Shown in pieces: positions 48,539 to 57,548 of a DNA stretch of 64,000 nt. The stretch spans positions 142,529 to 206,528 of IMG/VR virus record IMGVR_UViG_3300025364_000003; one strand, 5' to 3'. The notes beneath the pieces are model-generated. The model worked only from the letters and a program-made list of their open reading frames with translations, ran no database searches and had not been told where the DNA came from. The position numbers were made by a program, and so were the translations under genes. The stretch's first letter is position 1, and every line of letters starts with the position of its first letter.

Positions 48539-50461
48539 ATGAAGACTTTCACTTTAGAGCAACTCGCAGAAGGCGTACACCGTCGCTCGCTTGGTGCAGA
48601 CTCACCACGACTCGTAAAGAAGTGGGGAGCAACTGGTCTTCTTGAGGGCCTAAAAGGCATGAACCGAGATGGCATGGCACGTCTTCTTGAGAACCAGGCA
48701 GCTGAGCTTCTCAAGGAAACCAACGCTTTGTCCCTTGGTGGTGCTTCTTTGACCTCAAGCGGGAAGATTGCAGGTTTCACAAACGTTGCATTCCCAATCG
48801 TTCGCCGTGTTTTCGCAGGTTTGATTTCAAACGAGATCGTGTCGGTTCAGCCAATGAGCCTTCCAACCGGTCTTCTTTTCTACCTCGATTACACTTACGG
48901 CAGCTCGGTTGGTGGTGACGCAGGAACCGCAGCTAACCAGTTTGCAACAACTAGCGTTGTAGATCCATCAACTTACACCAGCCAGGATTCCGTATACAAC
49001 AACCCACGTGGTGTTGGCGTACGTTCTGGTTCTCTTGCAACCGGTGGACAGTATGACCTTGTAGGTCATGGTTACTCCAAGGTTCACAAGCAGAGCCGTT
49101 TCCTTTCTGGTTCAACCGACTCTGTTGGTTACTGGGCATCTGGCTCCATTTGGACCCCAGGTGGCACAGTAGACACCGCTGATGACTTCGAAGGTCTCAA
49201 CGCACGTTTCGTCATGTACGATACTCGTGTTGAAAACGACCTTACCGATGGCGTACTTGATTACTGCTTCGTGTTTGTCAGCGCATCTGAGTTTACCGAC
49301 AAGATCAACGGTGCTGACCTCAACAACCTCAACCAGATTGCACTCACCGGTTTCGGTGCAGCAACCAACTCTGCTGTTGAGTGGGGAGAGAAGTATCAAG
49401 GTGGTCGAGGCGTGCTTAACCTTCGTCAGATGAACCAGCGTGGTAACTGGAACTCAGCAACTGGTATCTTCACACCAGATCCGCTTAACGGTTCACACGT
49501 GCTTCACGTAGTTCGTCTTGCAAATGCAGGTACCGCACCAGCACCTGATGGAGCTGTCGGTAATGCAGTAACTGCTTCGGCAGCTATCGCAGACGCACTC
49601 AGCGTAAACTCTGACGGTTCAACTCTTACGATTCCAAGCTTCGAGTCTGACTTCGCAGTCGACGCAAGCCCACGTATCCCAGAGGTTGACATCCGCATTG
49701 AGTCCACCAGCGTTACGGCACAAACCCGTAAGCTCAGGGCTCGTTGGTCGCCAGAAATGGCTCAGGATCTCACAGCATTCTACTCAATCGATGTAGAAGT
49801 TGAGCTTACAAACATTCTCTCCGAGATGATTACGCTTGACATTGACCGTGAAATCTTGAACGACCTTCTCACCCAGGCAGGAGCAGCAAACCTCTACTGG
49901 TCCCGAGCACCAGGTAAGCTTGTCAACAAGTTCACCGGCGCAGAGGCTCTCCAGAGCAGCACGCTTTCTCCAGGCCCAATGGCATTCGTAAACATTCAAG
50001 AGTGGTACCAGACCCTCCTTGAGACTGTTACGGACGCAGCAAACACCATTCACCGTAAGACACTCCGTGGTTCCGGTAACTTCATTGTTACTTCCCCAGA
50101 TGTCTGCACCATCCTTGAGCACCTTGTTGCCTACAAGCCTTCCTACAGAGTAGATGCTGACGGTCAGGTTCGTGACAACATGGTAATCGGAGCAGAGGCA
50201 GTTGGTACTTTGAACAACCGTTACACGGTCTACAAAGACCCATATTTCCCAAGCAACAAGCTCTTGATCGGATTGAAGGGTAACACCTTCCTTGAGTCAG
50301 GATTCATCTACGCACCATACGTGCCACTTATCCTTACTCCAGTTATCTACGCTCAGGAAGACTTTACTCCACGTAAGGGCGTCATGACCCGATACGGTAA
50401 GAAGATGGTCAGAAATGACTTCTACGCAACCGTAACTGTTCTTGACATGGGTATAATTTAA
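48539..50461 (+). CDS. gp23: Major capsid protein, T4 gp23-like
   Basis: KKWGATGLLEGL, FPIVRRVF, SVQPMSLPTGLLFYLD, TRKLRARWSPE.AQDL, EITLDIDREIL, YAPYVPL, FTPRKGVMTRYGK. Confidence 0.96.
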   Translation: MKTFTLEQLAEGVHRRSLGADSPRLVKKWGATGLLEGLKGMNRDGMARLLENQAAELLKETNALSLGGASLTSSGKIAGFTNVAFPIVRRVFAGLISNEIVSVQPMSLPTGLLFYLDYTYGSSVGGDAGTAANQFATTSVVDPSTYTSQDSVYNNPRGVGVRSGSLATGGQYDLVGHGYSKVHKQSRFLSGSTDSVGYWASGSIWTPGGTVDTADDFEGLNARFVMYDTRVENDLTDGVLDYCFVFVSASEFTDKINGADLNNLNQIALTGFGAATNSAVEWGEKYQGGRGVLNLRQMNQRGNWNSATGIFTPDPLNGSHVLHVVRLANAGTAPAPDGAVGNAVTASAAIADALSVNSDGSTLTIPSFESDFAVDASPRIPEVDIRIESTSVTAQTRKLRARWSPEMAQDLTAFYSIDVEVELTNILSEMITLDIDREILNDLLTQAGAANLYWSRAPGKLVNKFTGAEALQSSTLSPGPMAFVNIQEWYQTLLETVTDAANTIHRKTLRGSGNFIVTSPDVCTILEHLVAYKPSYRVDADGQVRDNMVIGAEAVGTLNNRYTVYKDPYFPSNKLLIGLKGNTFLESGFIYAPYVPLILTPVIYAQEDFTPRKGVMTRYGKKMVRNDFYATVTVLDMGII

Positions 50462-50645: not shown

Positions 50646-51539
50646 ATGAAAATATTTTTACACGGATATGCAAATAAGCGTGGTATTTATAAAATTACTA
50701 ATACAAAAAATGGACGTTATTATTATGGATCCGCTTCTCGTTTAAAAGAACGAGCTTATTCTCATCGGGACGATTTGCGCAGAAATAGGCATGCGAATTT
50801 GTTTTTACAAAGAGATTATAACAAATGTGGCGAAGATGCATTTATATTTGAAGCAATAGAAACAGTAGATGGAGCCAGGGAAGAACAACTCGCTAAAGAA
50901 CAGGCTTACCTTGATAAATTTTTTGATGGAGGAAACGAATGTTACAACCTTTGTCCAAAAGCAGAAAGTAGAGAAGGTAGCAAAAATGTTCGTCCATTTA
51001 ACCCAGAAACAGACGGGCGAGTAACATCACGAACGCCAGAAGTGTGTGCTATTGTAAGCAAGAAAAACAAAAAGACGTGGAACACACCAAAGAAAAAAGA
51101 AGAAGCTCTCAAGAACGCTCAAAAGCGTTGGGATAACCATTCTGCTGATGTAACCGTCACCAATAAAAAGACTGGTGAAACTGTTACCATTGAAGGTTCT
51201 GTCAGGTCTTGGTGCCAAGAAAGAAATCTCTCTTATAAGTCATTTCATTTAATGCTCAAAGGCAAGACTAAATCTTCAGGCGGTTGGTTTCTTGGCACGG
51301 AAGAACCGACTTACGTGGAACGCAAGGGTGAAAAAAGAAAACCTTTGTCGGATGAACATAGAGCCAAGATAGCGGGTGGTAAATATGCTGGTGTTGTCTT
51401 GAAGAACAAGGTGTCTGGTGAGATGTTTGTGGTTGGTGAGAATGCCAAAGCTGATTGCCGTGAGCGTGGCATTTCATATTCAAGCTTTGCAAAAATGATG
51501 AGTGGTAAGTGTAAAAGTGCTTCTGGTTGGATAGTCTAA
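50646..51539 (+). CDS. Free-standing GIY-YIG homing endonuclease
   Basis: GIYKITNTKNGRYYYGSA..R, HAN..LQRDYNK.GEDAF, EQAYLD, YNL; two C-terminal SYxSF..M..GK.KS..GW repeats. Confidence 0.9.
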   Translation: MKIFLHGYANKRGIYKITNTKNGRYYYGSASRLKERAYSHRDDLRRNRHANLFLQRDYNKCGEDAFIFEAIETVDGAREEQLAKEQAYLDKFFDGGNECYNLCPKAESREGSKNVRPFNPETDGRVTSRTPEVCAIVSKKNKKTWNTPKKKEEALKNAQKRWDNHSADVTVTNKKTGETVTIEGSVRSWCQERNLSYKSFHLMLKGKTKSSGGWFLGTEEPTYVERKGEKRKPLSDEHRAKIAGGKYAGVVLKNKVSGEMFVVGENAKADCRERGISYSSFAKMMSGKCKSASGWIV

Positions 51540-51585: not shown

Positions 51586-51610
51586 GTTGTTAAAGTCACT
51601 ATTTATACTA

Positions 51611-52225
51611 GTGAACAGTAACCTAAAATCGTTATTAACCTTTCTTGAATCCAGTGCTCAACATGAGGCACTCGAATACGGAACGGAACCAAAAGATGAG
51701 GTTGCTTATCCACCATTTATAAAAAAGCTCGCCAAAGAAGTGGAATTGTTGGATAGAAAAGTTCAAAAGGCATATGAAGAGGGGGATCCCAATGCTACAG
51801 AACTTGATGTGTTGTTTGCAATGAAGCAAGAACAGTTGGAAACTGCCTTATCAGAGTTAGAAGACGAGCCGAAAGAAACTGACTTCGAGGATGAATTTCA
51901 AAGTGGCGGGCAAGAAGAAATGATGAGGCAATTTGCTTCAATCTACCGACATTGGCATGAAAAGATTCCTTATCAGGGTGTCATGTTGGACAAACAACAA
52001 CTTCTTGAGTTTCTTCGTGCTTGGGCTAGAGATTACGGCTTTAGACTTGGTGGATTCAAGGAAGAGACAACTGACGAGCAGCTTTTAGATGCAGCCAAAG
52101 ATTCATATGAGCGCATGAAATATCTAATCAACAAAAAGCAAGTTGTTGAACACAAAGCGTTGAATCTCGAATCTCTCTTGTCGGTCCTTGAACAAGCCGA
52201 ACTTGAAGCGTGTTTGGACGAATAA
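51611..52225 (+). CDS. Hypothetical acidic protein
   Basis: GTG start after CTATTTA; LKSLLTFLES and LESLLSVLEQ motifs. Confidence 0.6.
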   Translation: MNSNLKSLLTFLESSAQHEALEYGTEPKDEVAYPPFIKKLAKEVELLDRKVQKAYEEGDPNATELDVLFAMKQEQLETALSELEDEPKETDFEDEFQSGGQEEMMRQFASIYRHWHEKIPYQGVMLDKQQLLEFLRAWARDYGFRLGGFKEETTDEQLLDAAKDSYERMKYLINKKQVVEHKALNLESLLSVLEQAELEACLDE

Positions 52226-52319: not shown

Positions 52320-52691
52320 ATGTTAACAGAAAGACGTCTTAAGAAACTCGCTGGGCTTATAAAAGAATATGAAGAGGGTCTAATGGTCGGGGAAACGTAT
52401 CAAAGCTGGCTTGACGAACATGGCAAATTACCATCCTTGCCATCTAAGGCAGCAGACAAAATCGTGTACTCGCTTCATGACCTTGAAACGGAAACCGATA
52501 CAGAAGGATACGACGAACTTCAGATAAGCGTTGGTCGCTTACCTAAAGATCTTAAGTTAAAGATTGGTGATGAAATCCTGGTAGTTCCATCAGGATGGTA
52601 TTATTCAACTGAGTCAGAATGGGGCGGACCTAATGTACATGGCCCGTTTGATTCAAAAAAAGAAGCTAGAAACGCAGCAGTGTTTGGCTAA
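52320..52691 (+). CDS. Hypothetical protein with R.KKLAGL leader
   Basis: MLTERRLKKLAGLIKE. Confidence 0.65.
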   Translation: MLTERRLKKLAGLIKEYEEGLMVGETYQSWLDEHGKLPSLPSKAADKIVYSLHDLETETDTEGYDELQISVGRLPKDLKLKIGDEILVVPSGWYYSTESEWGGPNVHGPFDSKKEARNAAVFG

Positions 52692-52695
52692 TTGA

Positions 52696-53520
52696 TTACT
52701 GATCAAACAGGTACTCTAGGAGTCCTTCAACTACTGATTTTGGTTTCTTTTTATTTATCTTCTTTTTCTTCGTTGGATATTTGCCATGAATGTTTGGTGG
52801 ATTCTTTACGGCTTTCCAGATAAACCAAGTAACAGCTTGAAGTTCTTGTGGAGTCAATCCAACTAGGTCTGCTACTTTTCTGTAATCATGAATGATAGCT
52901 TCTCTTTCAGCCTTTGTTGGTTGTCTTAGATCTTGGAGACGTGTTTTAATTCCTCTCCACACATTGATTGCATGTCCATCAAGAACCAACTCTCTTTCGA
53001 CTCTGTCGGGATTCAACAAAGAATGAAAAAACACGGAAACCTTTGGACCTGCAACAAGACCAACATCTCCGGTGTCGAGGATCTTCAAAGCTTTATAAAC
53101 GTTCGATTTGTATGCAGGAACTTTTTCAAGTGGCCCCAAATCACGTTCGCCTTCAAGCATCAACCAGTTTTCTATTAGCCTCTGTGCGGCCAAGAGATTG
53201 ACTTTCCAGCCAAGGTTCGGACTGAGAACGGCAACAACGGCAGCGGTAACTGGCAACGGCAGCTCATATCTTTCTGCTAATTCTCTTACGTGTTGATGAG
53301 CATGTTGATACCAGTTGCTCCAGTAGTCGATTTCATCTTTGGTTGCTTTTTTCAGTACAGAAAGAATATTATGATAACTTTCGTTTTTTTGAAGATTCAT
53401 TTTTTCATGAGGGATTTTTTTCCTACTTGGTTCATTTAGAACGAAGTCTAAGCCGAATCTTTCCCTCTCATCATAATCGGCTTCAAGGAGCCATTTTAAT
53501 AGTCGTTCAACGTTTCCCAT
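52696..53520 (-). CDS. Conserved phage protein, possible HhH-glycosylase-like fold
   Basis: WYQHAH, AAVVAVLSPNLGW..N, GPKV..F, VLDGHA, ELQAVTW. Confidence 0.55.
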   Translation of the reverse strand: MGNVERLLKWLLEADYDERERFGLDFVLNEPSRKKIPHEKMNLQKNESYHNILSVLKKATKDEIDYWSNWYQHAHQHVRELAERYELPLPVTAAVVAVLSPNLGWKVNLLAAQRLIENWLMLEGERDLGPLEKVPAYKSNVYKALKILDTGDVGLVAGPKVSVFFHSLLNPDRVERELVLDGHAINVWRGIKTRLQDLRQPTKAEREAIIHDYRKVADLVGLTPQELQAVTWFIWKAVKNPPNIHGKYPTKKKKINKKKPKSVVEGLLEYLFDQ

Positions 53521-54451: not shown

Positions 54452-55696
54452 ATGAATCTAATAAAACCAAATGTTAACATCTGGTATCATGGGACGGAAA
54501 AGGGAATTAGTGGACCTTTGCGTTCAATATATCTAACACCAAGCAAAAATTTGGCTAAGCTGCATGGCGATGTTTACGCATTTAGAATTGATCCTAACGC
54601 TAGGTGGCTTGATATTGGCGAACTTTCTTGGGGCGTTCCAAGTATGGATACTATGGGATACGCTGAAGGGATGGATGAAAGATTTCGTTCTAAAGGCTTT
54701 GATGTGGTTTGGGATCGTTCTGATTATCGAAGAGGCCACCAACAAATCTACGTAGTTAACCCTGAGGTACTGTCAATGGTTGATAATATAAACGAATCCA
54801 TTAAGCTCAATAAGCTTTTGATGTTTCTTGAGGCCATATCTCCAGAACAAGTGGAAAAAATCGCATCAGCAGAACCAAATGATGTAATCACGGTATATCA
54901 TGGGACCCCTAAGTTCAGACTTCCTCTTTTGCTAAGTGGATTTGATGCAACCCAAGACATACCAAGAGATTATGGCGGGCCTGTTCATAGGGGCTTGTTT
55001 GTTACTCCAGATTTTGAAGTTGCTAAGAACTTTGGTGGTGGTGCCATTATAGAAATAAAGGTTCCAGCGAAGTTCATCCATGGAACTAACTACAGTGGTT
55101 TTATTGGCCGTAAACAGCAAAAGGAAAAAGGTAAAGAAATATTCGACTGGATTAAAGAAAAGTTTCCTAACTCATTTCGTCCGTACATGAGTCACACAAT
55201 GTTGTCGTCGGGCGCAGAGCCTCAAGGTTTGTTGATAGGAGTTGTAAAGCCAACCCAAATTACAAAGGTCTGGATTTACGAACATGAAAGTAACCAATGG
55301 GTTGAGTACGATCGTAAGGAATATTTGAAAAAACGTGATGTTTATAATCGACGTAGAGTTTTAGATCGATACGAAGAAGAAACTTTCTTTGATCCAGAGA
55401 TACACATGGCTGACCCAAATTTAGATCTTCAAGATTTTGTGAAAGCCTTAGCTAGGTTTGAAAACCGAGAAGGAATGGAAGAGAAATACTTGAAGTTTCT
55501 AAAAATGATGGGTAGCGTAGGAAGAGATAGGCTTGAAGAAAAACTAAGCATGATGGAAATAGGCGGTGCTAAGCTTGGCAAGCTGGCCATGAAAAACATT
55601 ATCGATCAAGTGATGGAATTAGTGGAAAAGGAAAAGAAACCTAAGATTGAGTCAACATTATCAATTGATAAGCTTTTGCACTACTTAGAAGGGTGA
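54452..55696 (+). CDS. Protein with two tandem ADP-ribosyltransferase-like (HGT) domains
   Basis: WYHGTEK..IYLTPSKNLAKLHG and VYHGTPK..GLFVTPDFEVAKNFG..IIEIKVP..EPQG; joined by LNKLLMFLEA. Confidence 0.6.
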   Translation: MNLIKPNVNIWYHGTEKGISGPLRSIYLTPSKNLAKLHGDVYAFRIDPNARWLDIGELSWGVPSMDTMGYAEGMDERFRSKGFDVVWDRSDYRRGHQQIYVVNPEVLSMVDNINESIKLNKLLMFLEAISPEQVEKIASAEPNDVITVYHGTPKFRLPLLLSGFDATQDIPRDYGGPVHRGLFVTPDFEVAKNFGGGAIIEIKVPAKFIHGTNYSGFIGRKQQKEKGKEIFDWIKEKFPNSFRPYMSHTMLSSGAEPQGLLIGVVKPTQITKVWIYEHESNQWVEYDRKEYLKKRDVYNRRRVLDRYEEETFFDPEIHMADPNLDLQDFVKALARFENREGMEEKYLKFLKMMGSVGRDRLEEKLSMMEIGGAKLGKLAMKNIIDQVMELVEKEKKPKIESTLSIDKLLHYLEG

Positions 55697-55702
55697 GCAC
55701 GT

Positions 55703-56548
55703 ATGAGCAATAAACTAAGATGGAAAAAATTAGCAGGACTTCTTACTGAAGGATATGAAGATCGCTGGCCTTCCCGTGAAGACGAAGAAGAAGAATTGGC
55801 CGATCTAAAATCAAAAGCAGAACCAAGACTTCCTCGAACTGTTGTTGTTGATGATGAAGAATATATTGGTGGTCGTCGGGCACCAGCCTGGATGCGTTCG
55901 GACTACGATCCAAAGAGTGATTCATATGCTTTTGATCTTGACTACAACCCGTATAAAGAATTAGATGAGCAAGTTGACATGGTTGCAGATATGAATGCGC
56001 CAGTTGAACCAGTAATTTCTGGACTTGCTCCTATCTCAAGTTTGGAGCAACAAAGAGATGATGTCAGAGATGAAATCGATGATGTCAAGAACTGGCTCGC
56101 TGGATACGTTTCTTATCTTAGAGCAATTCATCTTTGGTTTCACGCAGCTCATCATCTTACCAAAGGCACTGGATTCGCTGGTGACCATGAAGACCTTTAT
56201 GGAAGGATATATACTGAAGTCCAAGATGAGATTGATGGCGCCATAGAAAAAGCTGTCGGTGTTACCAACGATGAATTGCTTGCTTGCCCTCTGATGATTA
56301 CAAGCAACGCTGTTGAAATAATGGAAGAAGCAGGTTGTAAGGTAAGCGACAGTGCTCACAATATCGCAAAAGCCGGACTTCGTCTTGAAAAAGCTTATAT
56401 AAAATTTGTTGAGGAAATGTTTGCAACTTTGGAAGAAATGGATGCCATGACGCTTGGTTTGAATGATCAACTTGCATCATCAGCCAACACTCACGAGACG
56501 TATGTTTATCTTCTTCAGCAAAGAGTTAAGGATAGCAAAAAATTGTGA
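55703..56548 (+). CDS. Dps/ferritin-like domain protein with RWKKLAGL leader
   Basis: HLWFHAAHHLTKGTGFAGDHEDLYGRIY...IDGAIEK...HETYVYLL. Confidence 0.7.
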   Translation: MSNKLRWKKLAGLLTEGYEDRWPSREDEEEELADLKSKAEPRLPRTVVVDDEEYIGGRRAPAWMRSDYDPKSDSYAFDLDYNPYKELDEQVDMVADMNAPVEPVISGLAPISSLEQQRDDVRDEIDDVKNWLAGYVSYLRAIHLWFHAAHHLTKGTGFAGDHEDLYGRIYTEVQDEIDGAIEKAVGVTNDELLACPLMITSNAVEIMEEAGCKVSDSAHNIAKAGLRLEKAYIKFVEEMFATLEEMDAMTLGLNDQLASSANTHETYVYLLQQRVKDSKKL

Positions 56549-57056: not shown

Positions 57057-57548
57057 ATGGCAGAGACACTTACAGTAACAGATATGCTTCCTACTAAGTT
57101 TGAACCACTTGCAAAACGTAGGTTCTTGCTTGCTATTGAAGGCATTGACTCCTTTATCGTAAAAACCGCAGCTAGACCAACATACACCACAGAGGAAATT
57201 ACAGTCAACTGGATCAACCACACTCGTTACCTCGCAGGTAAGACAACCTTCAGTACAATTTCAGTAACTCTTCACGATCCAATCGCACCTGCTGGTGCGC
57301 AGCAAGTTATGGAGTGGGTGCGTCTTTGCTTTGAATCTGTTTCTGGCCGTGGTGGTTACGCTGATTTCTACAAGCGTGACATCCAACTCAAGATGCTTGA
57401 CCCAGTTGGTACCGTAGTTCAACTTTGGGACATCAAGGGTGCATTCATTACAGAAGCAAACTTCAACGACGTTTCCTATGATTCAACTGCTGACCTTGCA
57501 GAAATCTCATTGACCATTCGCTTCGATAACGCAGTTTTGCAGTTTTAA
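57057..57548 (+). CDS. gp19: Tail tube protein, T4 gp19-like
   Basis: FEPLAKRRF, TLHDPIAPAGAQQVMEW, YKRDIQLKMLDPVG.VV..W.IKGAF, LTIRFD. Confidence 0.9.
   Translation: MAETLTVTDMLPTKFEPLAKRRFLLAIEGIDSFIVKTAARPTYTTEEITVNWINHTRYLAGKTTFSTISVTLHDPIAPAGAQQVMEWVRLCFESVSGRGGYADFYKRDIQLKMLDPVGTVVQLWDIKGAFITEANFNDVSYDSTADLAEISLTIRFDNAVLQF

Follow-up and report, generated by a model that had tools for sequence, protein, structure and literature searches.

A predicted two-module ADP-ribosyltransferase-like protein encoded between the capsid and tail tube genes of a T4-like megaphage

What is the role of a protein of 414 amino acids (aa) that is encoded between the major capsid and tail tube genes of an uncultured giant phage, and does it carry two ADP-ribosyltransferase (ART) domains? 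The open reading frame (ORF) in question lies at positions 54452-55696 (+ strand; ATG at 54452, stop codon at 55694-55696) of a 64-kb stretch of DNA, here called the window, that forms the 3' end of a 206.5 kb IMG/VR viral record (IMGVR_UViG_3300025364_000003; 45% complete according to CheckV). Its product, designated P0001, is called identically on 23 public contigs from hypersaline-lake metagenomes. Identical copies of the gene are found on contigs of up to 461 kb, indicating that the phage is a T4-like megaphage of approximately 461 kb. On balance, we favour the view that this gene encodes a two-module ART effector of the polyvalent type. We infer activity, substrate, head packaging and proteolytic separation with a confidence that falls in that order. 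No match to P0001 was found among GenBank phages searched with tblastn and megablast, no paralogues were detected in 206 kb of the genome, and a six-frame search of this 206 kb identified no canonical ART-PolyVal domain.

A preliminary description of this DNA had proposed that the protein consists of two ART-like domains of the H type (PARP/Tpt1/diphtheria-like), each with an HGT and a [YF]xT motif, and that a junction helix, LNKLLMFLEA, recurs at the C-terminus as IDKLLHYLEG. Both motif pairs are present in the translation where they had been placed: W11-Y-H-G-T15 and I26-Y-L-T-P30, then A35...G39, in the N-terminal (N) module, and V148-Y-H-G-T152 and L182-F-V-T-P186, then A191...G195, in the second (core) module. 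The two helix peptides were likewise found, at aa 119-128 (L119-A128) and 405-414 (I405-G414).

The N module (aa 1-112; 54452..54787, +) is predicted to be a small ART-fold domain with the residues H13, Y27 and Q98. An AlphaFold2 (AF2) model of aa 1-122 based on 29 sequences has a predicted local distance difference test score (pLDDT) of 89.9 and a predicted template modelling score (pTM) of 0.83. When the module was compared to known structures using VIA-align, almost all of the top rows were ART-fold entries: diphtheria toxin is the best match (Z 6.7), and the others include further diphtheria-like toxins (Z ~6), AcrIF11 (Z 5.5), PARP1/2 (Z 5.2-5.4) and RES and ParT toxins (Z ~5). The top Foldseek row is KptA. 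At the profile level, the N family was compared using hhalign to an ART-PolyVal profile built from the PF18760 domain of a fused relative, P0008, and its stand-alone homologues. The two align over 94 of ~112 columns (probability 78.6%, E 1.7e-5), with H13, Y27 and Q98 paired with the H, Y and E of ART-PolyVal, and the C-terminal third of the module alone gives an E value of 4.6e-5. The N model also superposes on an ART-PolyVal (PF18760) cluster of the ESM Atlas with a template modelling score (TM) of 0.64 and a root-mean-square deviation (rmsd) of 3.2 over 101 residues. No PF18760 Pfam hits were obtained among the 29 N-family members. H13, which lies where the first modelled strand ends, is shared by 25 of 28 members, and the strand-2 residue Y27 by 27 of 29. 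Where the H-Y-E clade has its catalytic Glu/Asp, at the start of strand 5, the N module has Q98; Gln is conserved here in 26 of 29 members, and no member has D or E. By model and profile, the N module is a predicted minimal ART-fold domain related to ART-PolyVal, with an H-Y-Q triad.

The core module was modelled as aa 119-414 (AF2, 29 sequences; pLDDT 91.2, pTM 0.85). In an exhaustive VIA-align search, 21 of the 22 top rows are ART-fold or ART-like proteins, the other (rank 18) being a protein of unknown function. Matches include TreX (Z 8.2), pertussis S1 (7.7), EcPltA (7.2), mouse Tpt1 (7yw2; Z 7.0, rmsd 3.1), Scabin (6.9), KptA (9ld3; Z 6.8, 22% identity), PARP16 (6.2), Arr (6.0), DarT (5.7), LT (5.7) and diphtheria toxin (5.3). 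They span model residues ~20-175 (protein residues ~138-293), and the predicted ART-fold domain of the core module, as placed by the AF2 model, VIA-align and hhalign, is at aa 138-293 (54863..55330, +). Foldseek gave no strong match, the weak rows being mostly the same ARTs, and BFVD gave weak matches to jumbo-phage proteins, PARP-domain proteins, PolyVal ARTs and DarT. The core profile aligns with ART-PolyVal over the first 56 columns of the core ART domain, the N-terminal half (hhalign probability 92.2%, E 5.9e-7); this alignment covers H150, F-D165 and R172 and pairs F183 with the ART-PolyVal Tyr. PF18760 hits below threshold were obtained in nine of the 29 core members (best E 0.0087), and no other family recurs. 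In a language-model search, the annotated clusters nearest to the core are ART-PolyVal and Arr-ms.

Conservation within the core family is strict. H150 (where the first modelled strand ends), G151, F183, E256, P257 and Q258 are each present in all 29 members, as are G163-F-D165, R172, H179, R220 and S241-F-R-P244, and K207 and H210 are near-invariant. The strand-2 aromatic residue is the invariant F183, which is aromatic but is not the Tyr of the clade. Q258 directly precedes modelled strand 5 and E256 is two residues before the strand; a weak sub-profile alignment of the core (E 0.035) implies that this strand is ~3 residues longer than in the N module. The core also carries an insert of ~45 residues with invariant basic residues, and a helical C-terminal domain (aa 321-404; 55412..55663, +) in which helices are modelled at model positions 208-277 with pLDDT >90. 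This domain has weak and unspecific fold matches (Z <5) and is kept in stand-alone family members.

A fold check of each domain had been set beforehand as the point at which the assignment to H-type ARTs could fail. The proposal held: both domains model confidently and match ART structures near-exclusively, with Z scores of 6.7 (N module) and 8.2 (core), to be read with the caution that VIA-align values of Z <8 may reflect a common arrangement only. The ART assignment is based on the near-exclusive ART lists together with coverage of the whole domain and independent profile matches. We are highly confident that both domains have the ART fold in the models, and at least one of them is probably an NAD-dependent transferase or NADase, as judged from sequence and model. 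Neither P0001 nor any of its parts gave a PF18760 hit, even at an E value of 10 (the gathering threshold of this family is 31.2 bits), and by profile comparison both modules are remote relatives of ART-PolyVal and not members of it. ART-PolyVal itself has been placed in the H-Y-D/E Tox-ART-HYD2 clade, which is related to the PARPs and diphtheria toxin (Iyer et al., PMC5512222).

The similarity between the two halves raises the question of whether the gene arose by tandem duplication. A word search with P0001 returned 30 relatives. The widespread unit in the aligned relatives is aa ~126-414, which also occurs in stand-alone versions of ~265-285 aa, and the first 115 residues are carried by just two of these relatives (P0002 and P0003). 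When the N part was searched alone, stand-alone homologues of 114-200 aa were found. An exhaustive profile search identified 31 N-family clusters among 1.84 billion representatives; by this count, the family is small and rare. No similarity between the N and core halves was detected using BLASTP. Comparison of the halves using hhalign gave an E value of 0.0047 and a probability of 7.5%, in the same register as the motifs of the preliminary description, and deeper alignments gave an E value of 0.012 and a probability of 3.6%. A recent internal duplication is ruled out by the empty BLASTP result, the low hhalign probabilities and the existence of a separate stand-alone family for each half. At the sequence level, the halves are two different mobile modular families and not a tandem duplication. 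Their resemblance is nonetheless real, since the two halves separately match the ART-PolyVal profile at the same motifs and ART folds are modelled for both.

Both families are found in a variety of domain arrangements. The core is flanked on one side or on both by ParB-like domains in P0004, P0009, P0010 and P0018, is combined with a GNAT domain in P0006, and is followed by a canonical ART-PolyVal domain in P0008. The N module directly precedes ART-PolyVal in P0053 (1340 aa), precedes an Arr-ms-like ART in P0047, and follows ART-PolyVal and GNAT domains in P0048. P0001 and its relatives thus show the domain architecture of polyvalent proteins, namely at least two unrelated effector modules that are shuffled among relatives, in proteins of up to 1340 aa. 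ARTs are the most common modifying domain of phage polyvalent proteins and may be present in several copies per protein (PMC5512222), and those of such proteins are predicted to be packaged in the head (PMC5512222; PMC9503650). As polyvalent proteins may hold several ARTs, the double ART of P0001 is a recurring arrangement and not an oddity. A further relative, P0022 (397 aa), joins the first part of a core-family domain to TnpB/OrfB_IS605 and a Cas12f-like TNB region; it may represent an insertion sequence in a core-family gene or a gene-calling artefact.

The position of the gene suggests a connection with the virion. A gp23-like major capsid gene (48539..50461, +; PF07068), whose product is ~30% identical to T4-like major head proteins by tblastn, lies 4 kb upstream. 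A gp19-like tail tube gene (57057..57548, +; phrog_4542, E 1.2e-28) lies 1.4 kb downstream; its match to PF06841 (E 3.8e-5, 24.0 bits) is under the 28.2-bit cut-off. Between the capsid gene and the target are a GIY-YIG gene, two small genes, a DUF7178 gene (-) and two more minus-strand genes, and between the target and the tail tube gene are a gene encoding 281 aa (55703..56548, +) and a DUF192 gene (-). In a sister megaphage the gene order is the same, and the slot is occupied by P0009, which consists of a core module between two ParB-like domains. Because the order is kept while the content of the slot differs, this appears to be a variable effector position in the head-tail block. A prohead protease gene of the T4 gp21 family (PF03420, Peptidase_S77; 78.2 bits, cut-off 27) was identified ~80 kb upstream of the target gene, outside the window (G000:C1:117261-117686; locus L002).

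Three observations concern the surroundings of this slot. The GIY-YIG gene (50646-51539, +) encodes a homing endonuclease and directly follows the gp23-like capsid gene; a GIY-YIG gene follows the capsid gene in the sister megaphage (L007) also, and in the T4-like phage IME08 segD follows gene 23. The sister megaphage encodes (L007:17682-17824 and beyond) a 905-aa product with hits to the major vault protein shoulder domain (PF11978) and a faint Vault_3 hit, ~8 kb from the syntenic effector slot. In the window, a gene with a Pfam hit to Volactin (PF25216) at 62..64 kb (L003 19108-20112), ~8 kb downstream of the target, adjoins an HNH endonuclease gene.

The peptide at the junction of the two modules (aa 119-128; 54806..54835, +) ends in F-L-E127 followed by A128 and is a candidate prohead-protease site. 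It corresponds to the helix that is conserved at the N-terminus of core-family proteins: the stand-alone members nearest to P0001 begin with such a peptide, in which hydrophobic-hydrophobic-x-Glu is followed by Ala, Ile or Glu. Peptides of this type are present at module boundaries in many relatives and are not a private repeat of P0001. The C-terminal copy (aa 405-414; 55664..55693, +), which ends in Y-L-E413-G414 in the translation, has counterparts in P0004, P0008, P0009 and P0010 that form the joint to a further module, either ParB-like or ART-PolyVal. In both models pLDDT is <60 at aa 112-125, consistent with an exposed linker. F-L-E127/A and Y-L-E413/G are candidate cleavage sites of the hydrophobic-x-Glu, gp21 type. 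In T4, the gp21 protease recognises a short motif and cleaves behind its Glu, proteins are brought into the prohead core by short capsid targeting sequences at their N-termini, and Alt is a head-packaged, injected ART from which gp21 removes both termini (PMC9026906).

Another peptide recurs in the neighbourhood. A leader of ~18 residues, x-K-I-L-K-E-R-W-x-x-L-A-G-L-L-x-E, starts at least seven otherwise unrelated phage genes, all of them encoded on the + strand in a cluster close to the target. Similar peptides are found at the N-termini of products encoded from window positions 52320, 55703 (the 281-aa gene next to the target, whose leader includes R-W-x-x-L-A-G-L-L-x-E), 59361, 59575, ~60020 and 61756, at G000:C1:140851 and 141297, and at the C-terminus of a 753-aa protein just before the capsid gene (window 48448). 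The copies use differing synonymous codons, which indicates selection on the peptide and not on the DNA, and every copy ends in [LIV]-x-Glu. The leader resembles the N-terminal propeptide of the capsid protein of this phage and of a T4-like gp23, it is also found between modules in the fused proteins P0003 and P0006, and stand-alone ART-PolyVal proteins begin with a similar helix. Judging by these sequence features, the leader may act as a signal for capsid targeting or protease processing. Fusion or fission with neighbouring genes is not supported, as the downstream modules of P0003 and P0006 match window genes via the short leader peptide only. The DUF7178 protein (52696-53520, -) has a peptide of the L-L-x-[WY]-L-x-E type at both ends, as is found around the core ART, and a 212-aa ORF (51587-52225, +) has similar peptides near both ends, suggesting that a module-flanking helix is common to several neighbours.

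Based on these features, a most likely mechanism can be proposed. The core module at least would bind NAD+ and move ADP-ribose onto a host macromolecule; the N module would do the same by a non-canonical route, or would bind NAD or ADP-ribose in a regulatory role. The location of the gene in the head-tail block suggests that the protein would be synthesised late in infection and taken up into the prohead, where the gp21-type protease could cut after E127 and trim after E413. The two parts, aa 1-127 and aa 128-413, would then come apart and, like T4 Alt, reach the host together with the phage DNA. By analogy with T4, packaging of P0001 into the head is plausible, though we rate it slightly short of probable. 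Cleavage at the junction is more tentative, and we consider it somewhat unlikely; the gp21-type protease gene, the hydrophobic-x-Glu ends, the flexible linker and the T4 Alt precedent provide circumstantial support. A broader proposal, which seems to us unlikely, is that a portable peptide code loads unrelated proteins, P0001 among them, into the head and cuts fused effectors into separate modules, with two forms: the N-terminal leader K-E-R-W-x-x-L-A-G-L-L-x-E and the junction helix L-x-x-L-L-x-x-L-E. The N module, with its H-Y-Q triad, would under this proposal represent a novel, non-canonical class of ART-fold domain that is habitually paired with another ART and acts as a sensor of NAD or ADP-ribose or as an unusual transferase.

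Several results weigh against the reading of P0001 as a packaged two-module ART effector. Scans of the whole protein and of three parts with Pfam, PHROG and NCBIfam gave no model at threshold, and PDB sequence-profile searches with both modules gave no match even at an E value of 10. The Z scores of 6.7 and 8.2 are moderate and can be in the range of a mere common arrangement. Canonical catalysis by the N module is doubtful in the absence of an acidic strand-5 residue, and the predicted core motif is H-F-(E/Q), with E256 and Q258 both candidates for the catalytic place. Scans for sigma-70 promoters and terminators gave results at or below shuffled expectation, and all six copies of the T4 late-promoter box, TATAAATA, are on the minus strand, none of them upstream of the target gene; these scans thus give no indication of expression timing. 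The gene was found in none of the RNA runs searched for it. P0001 itself begins without an N-terminal leader, no fusion to a MuF or portal domain was seen, and distant core homologues adjoin non-structural genes, including those for ribonucleotide reductase (RNR), SNF2 and metabolic proteins. A cut after E413 would remove a single residue, suggesting a role other than cleavage for the C-terminal peptide; its helix may be a docking element instead.

The last of these points also speak for an alternative in which P0001 is a cytoplasmic enzyme, neither packaged nor cut, whose peptides came along with the modules as linker or interaction helices: it has no leader and no MuF or portal fusion, its distant homologues have non-structural neighbours, and its C-terminal peptide copy ends one residue before the stop codon, in a helix that is modelled with fair confidence. 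We regard this as a substantial possibility, albeit on the improbable side, given that the slot between the capsid and tail tube genes is kept in the sister phage, that the genome contains a gp21-type protease gene, that the peptides, with their hydrophobic-x-Glu ends, are similar to the N-terminal propeptide of the capsid protein, and that T4 Alt provides a precedent. A different question is whether both modules are active. The core may be the sole enzyme, with the H-Y-Q N module a pseudo-ART whose ligand would be NAD+, ADP-ribose or a target carrying ADP-ribose, and which would have a sensor, targeting or regulatory role for an adjacent catalytic domain. Such a role is possible but unlikely. 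It would fit the Gln found in 26 of 29 members (never D or E) at the position aligned to the ART-PolyVal Glu, and the finding that in several multidomain members the N module adjoins another ART from the core family, ART-PolyVal or Arr-ms. Glu-to-Gln substitution in diphtheria toxin and PARP1 strongly reduces or alters catalysis; mono-ARTs without the Glu, such as those of the PARP10 type, are nevertheless active. Moreover, stand-alone N-module proteins of 114-135 aa exist, indicating that the module can function alone, and other invariant acidic residues (D66, D84, D88 and D91) could substitute for the missing Glu.

Two further alternatives concern the chemistry. The target could be a nucleic acid, either DNA or RNA ends or bases (as for DarT, Scabin and pierisin-like enzymes) or an RNA 2'- or 5'-phosphate (as for Tpt1/KptA), so that phage DNA would be shielded, host nucleic acids blocked or RNA repaired. 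The Tpt1 and KptA lobes are the tightest core superpositions (7yw2 and 9ld3, above), KptA heads the Foldseek list for the N module, and DarT and Scabin are also listed. The invariant R172, H179, R220 and R243 and the near-invariant K207 and H210 could bind phosphates, and fusions to ParB-like nuclease or DNA-binding domains occur among the relatives. However, the N-terminal RNA lobe of Tpt1 is absent, the nearest profile relative, ART-PolyVal of the Tox-ART-HYD2 clade, has been grouped with protein-modifying ARTs (PMC5512222), and fold matches do not tell substrates apart; a nucleic-acid target therefore seems fairly unlikely to us. Alternatively, one or both modules could be an NAD+ glycohydrolase that depletes or reshapes host NAD+/ADP-ribose pools or destroys NAD-derived immune signals. 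ART-fold NADases exist, toxins of the RES and MbcT types are present in the N-module list (9r35, Z 5.0; 6fkg, Z 4.8), and NADase outcomes of the same chemistry have been described in a review (PMC9503650). These toxin matches rank below the transferases, and the R-E-S signature of RES-type toxins is absent from the sequence, making this explanation distinctly improbable. Among these possibilities, we continue to favour a two-module ART effector of the polyvalent type.

ART-bearing polyvalent and head-packaged proteins are already a known theme in phages; what is new here is the identification of two divergent families that are missed by Pfam, PHROGs and NCBIfam and that have unusual motifs, namely a conserved Gln at the catalytic position in the N family and an invariant E-P-Q with extra Arg and His residues in the core family. 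Among known systems, the closest is ART-PolyVal. Both modules share with it the H-G-T of strand 1 and the G-x-[YF]-[LV]-T of strand 2, and the N module also has its G-[YF]-D ... strand-5 ... P-E-x-L layout. The biology is similar in that both are phage-encoded and modular, with several ARTs per protein and fusions to ParB, GNAT and similar domains. Unlike ART-PolyVal, both modules fall under the Pfam threshold and the N module has Gln in place of the strand-5 acid, whereas the core has Phe in place of Tyr, the ~45-residue insert (with invariant G-R and S-F-R-P), the E-P-Q motif and the extra helical domain.

Diphtheria toxin and the PARPs (H-Y-E) share the strand-1 His and strand-2 Tyr with the N module and are its best structural matches. 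The N module differs from them in having Q98 in place of the catalytic Glu and in its small size (~110 aa, lacking the helical and acceptor loops of the PARPs), and sequence identity is 11-15%. The best matches of the core are the NAD lobe of Tpt1/KptA, DarT, and the R-S-E toxins TreX, pertussis S1 and Scabin (Z 5.7-8.2 over ~85-129 residues); in contrast to these, the core has neither the R-S-E triad nor the Tpt1 RNA lobe, and identity is 9-22%. The N module also superposes on residues 1419-1610 of chain B (probably gp27) of the cyanopodophage A4 pre-ejectosome (9k3a), with a VIA-align Z of 6.5, an rmsd of 3.5 over 104 residues, 20% identity and a Foldseek probability of 0.99. This domain looks like a solved ART-like fold inside a phage ejection protein that is internal to the virion. 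It differs from P0001 in belonging to a podovirus and to a protein of >1700 residues, and the paper describing it contains no ART annotation for the domain.

With respect to packaging, the relevant comparison is to T4 Alt. Both are ART-fold proteins of T4-type phages, and P0001 is encoded in a head-tail block of a genome that has a gp21 homologue and hydrophobic-x-Glu peptides. P0001 and its neighbours lead to a hypothesis for the choice and processing of effectors in an uncultured giant phage, involving the leader, the junction peptides and the gp21-type protease; if confirmed, it would generalise the T4 capsid-targeting principle and make injected effectors easier to predict from sequence alone. 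No sequence or family match between P0001 and Alt was found, and the two differ in clade: Alt belongs to the R-S-E (Alt/VIP2) ARTs, whereas P0001 is of the H type. Alt enters the prohead core, has its two ends trimmed by gp21 behind a Glu, and is injected together with the DNA (PMC9026906), while for P0001 packaging and cleavage are proposed by analogy with this route.

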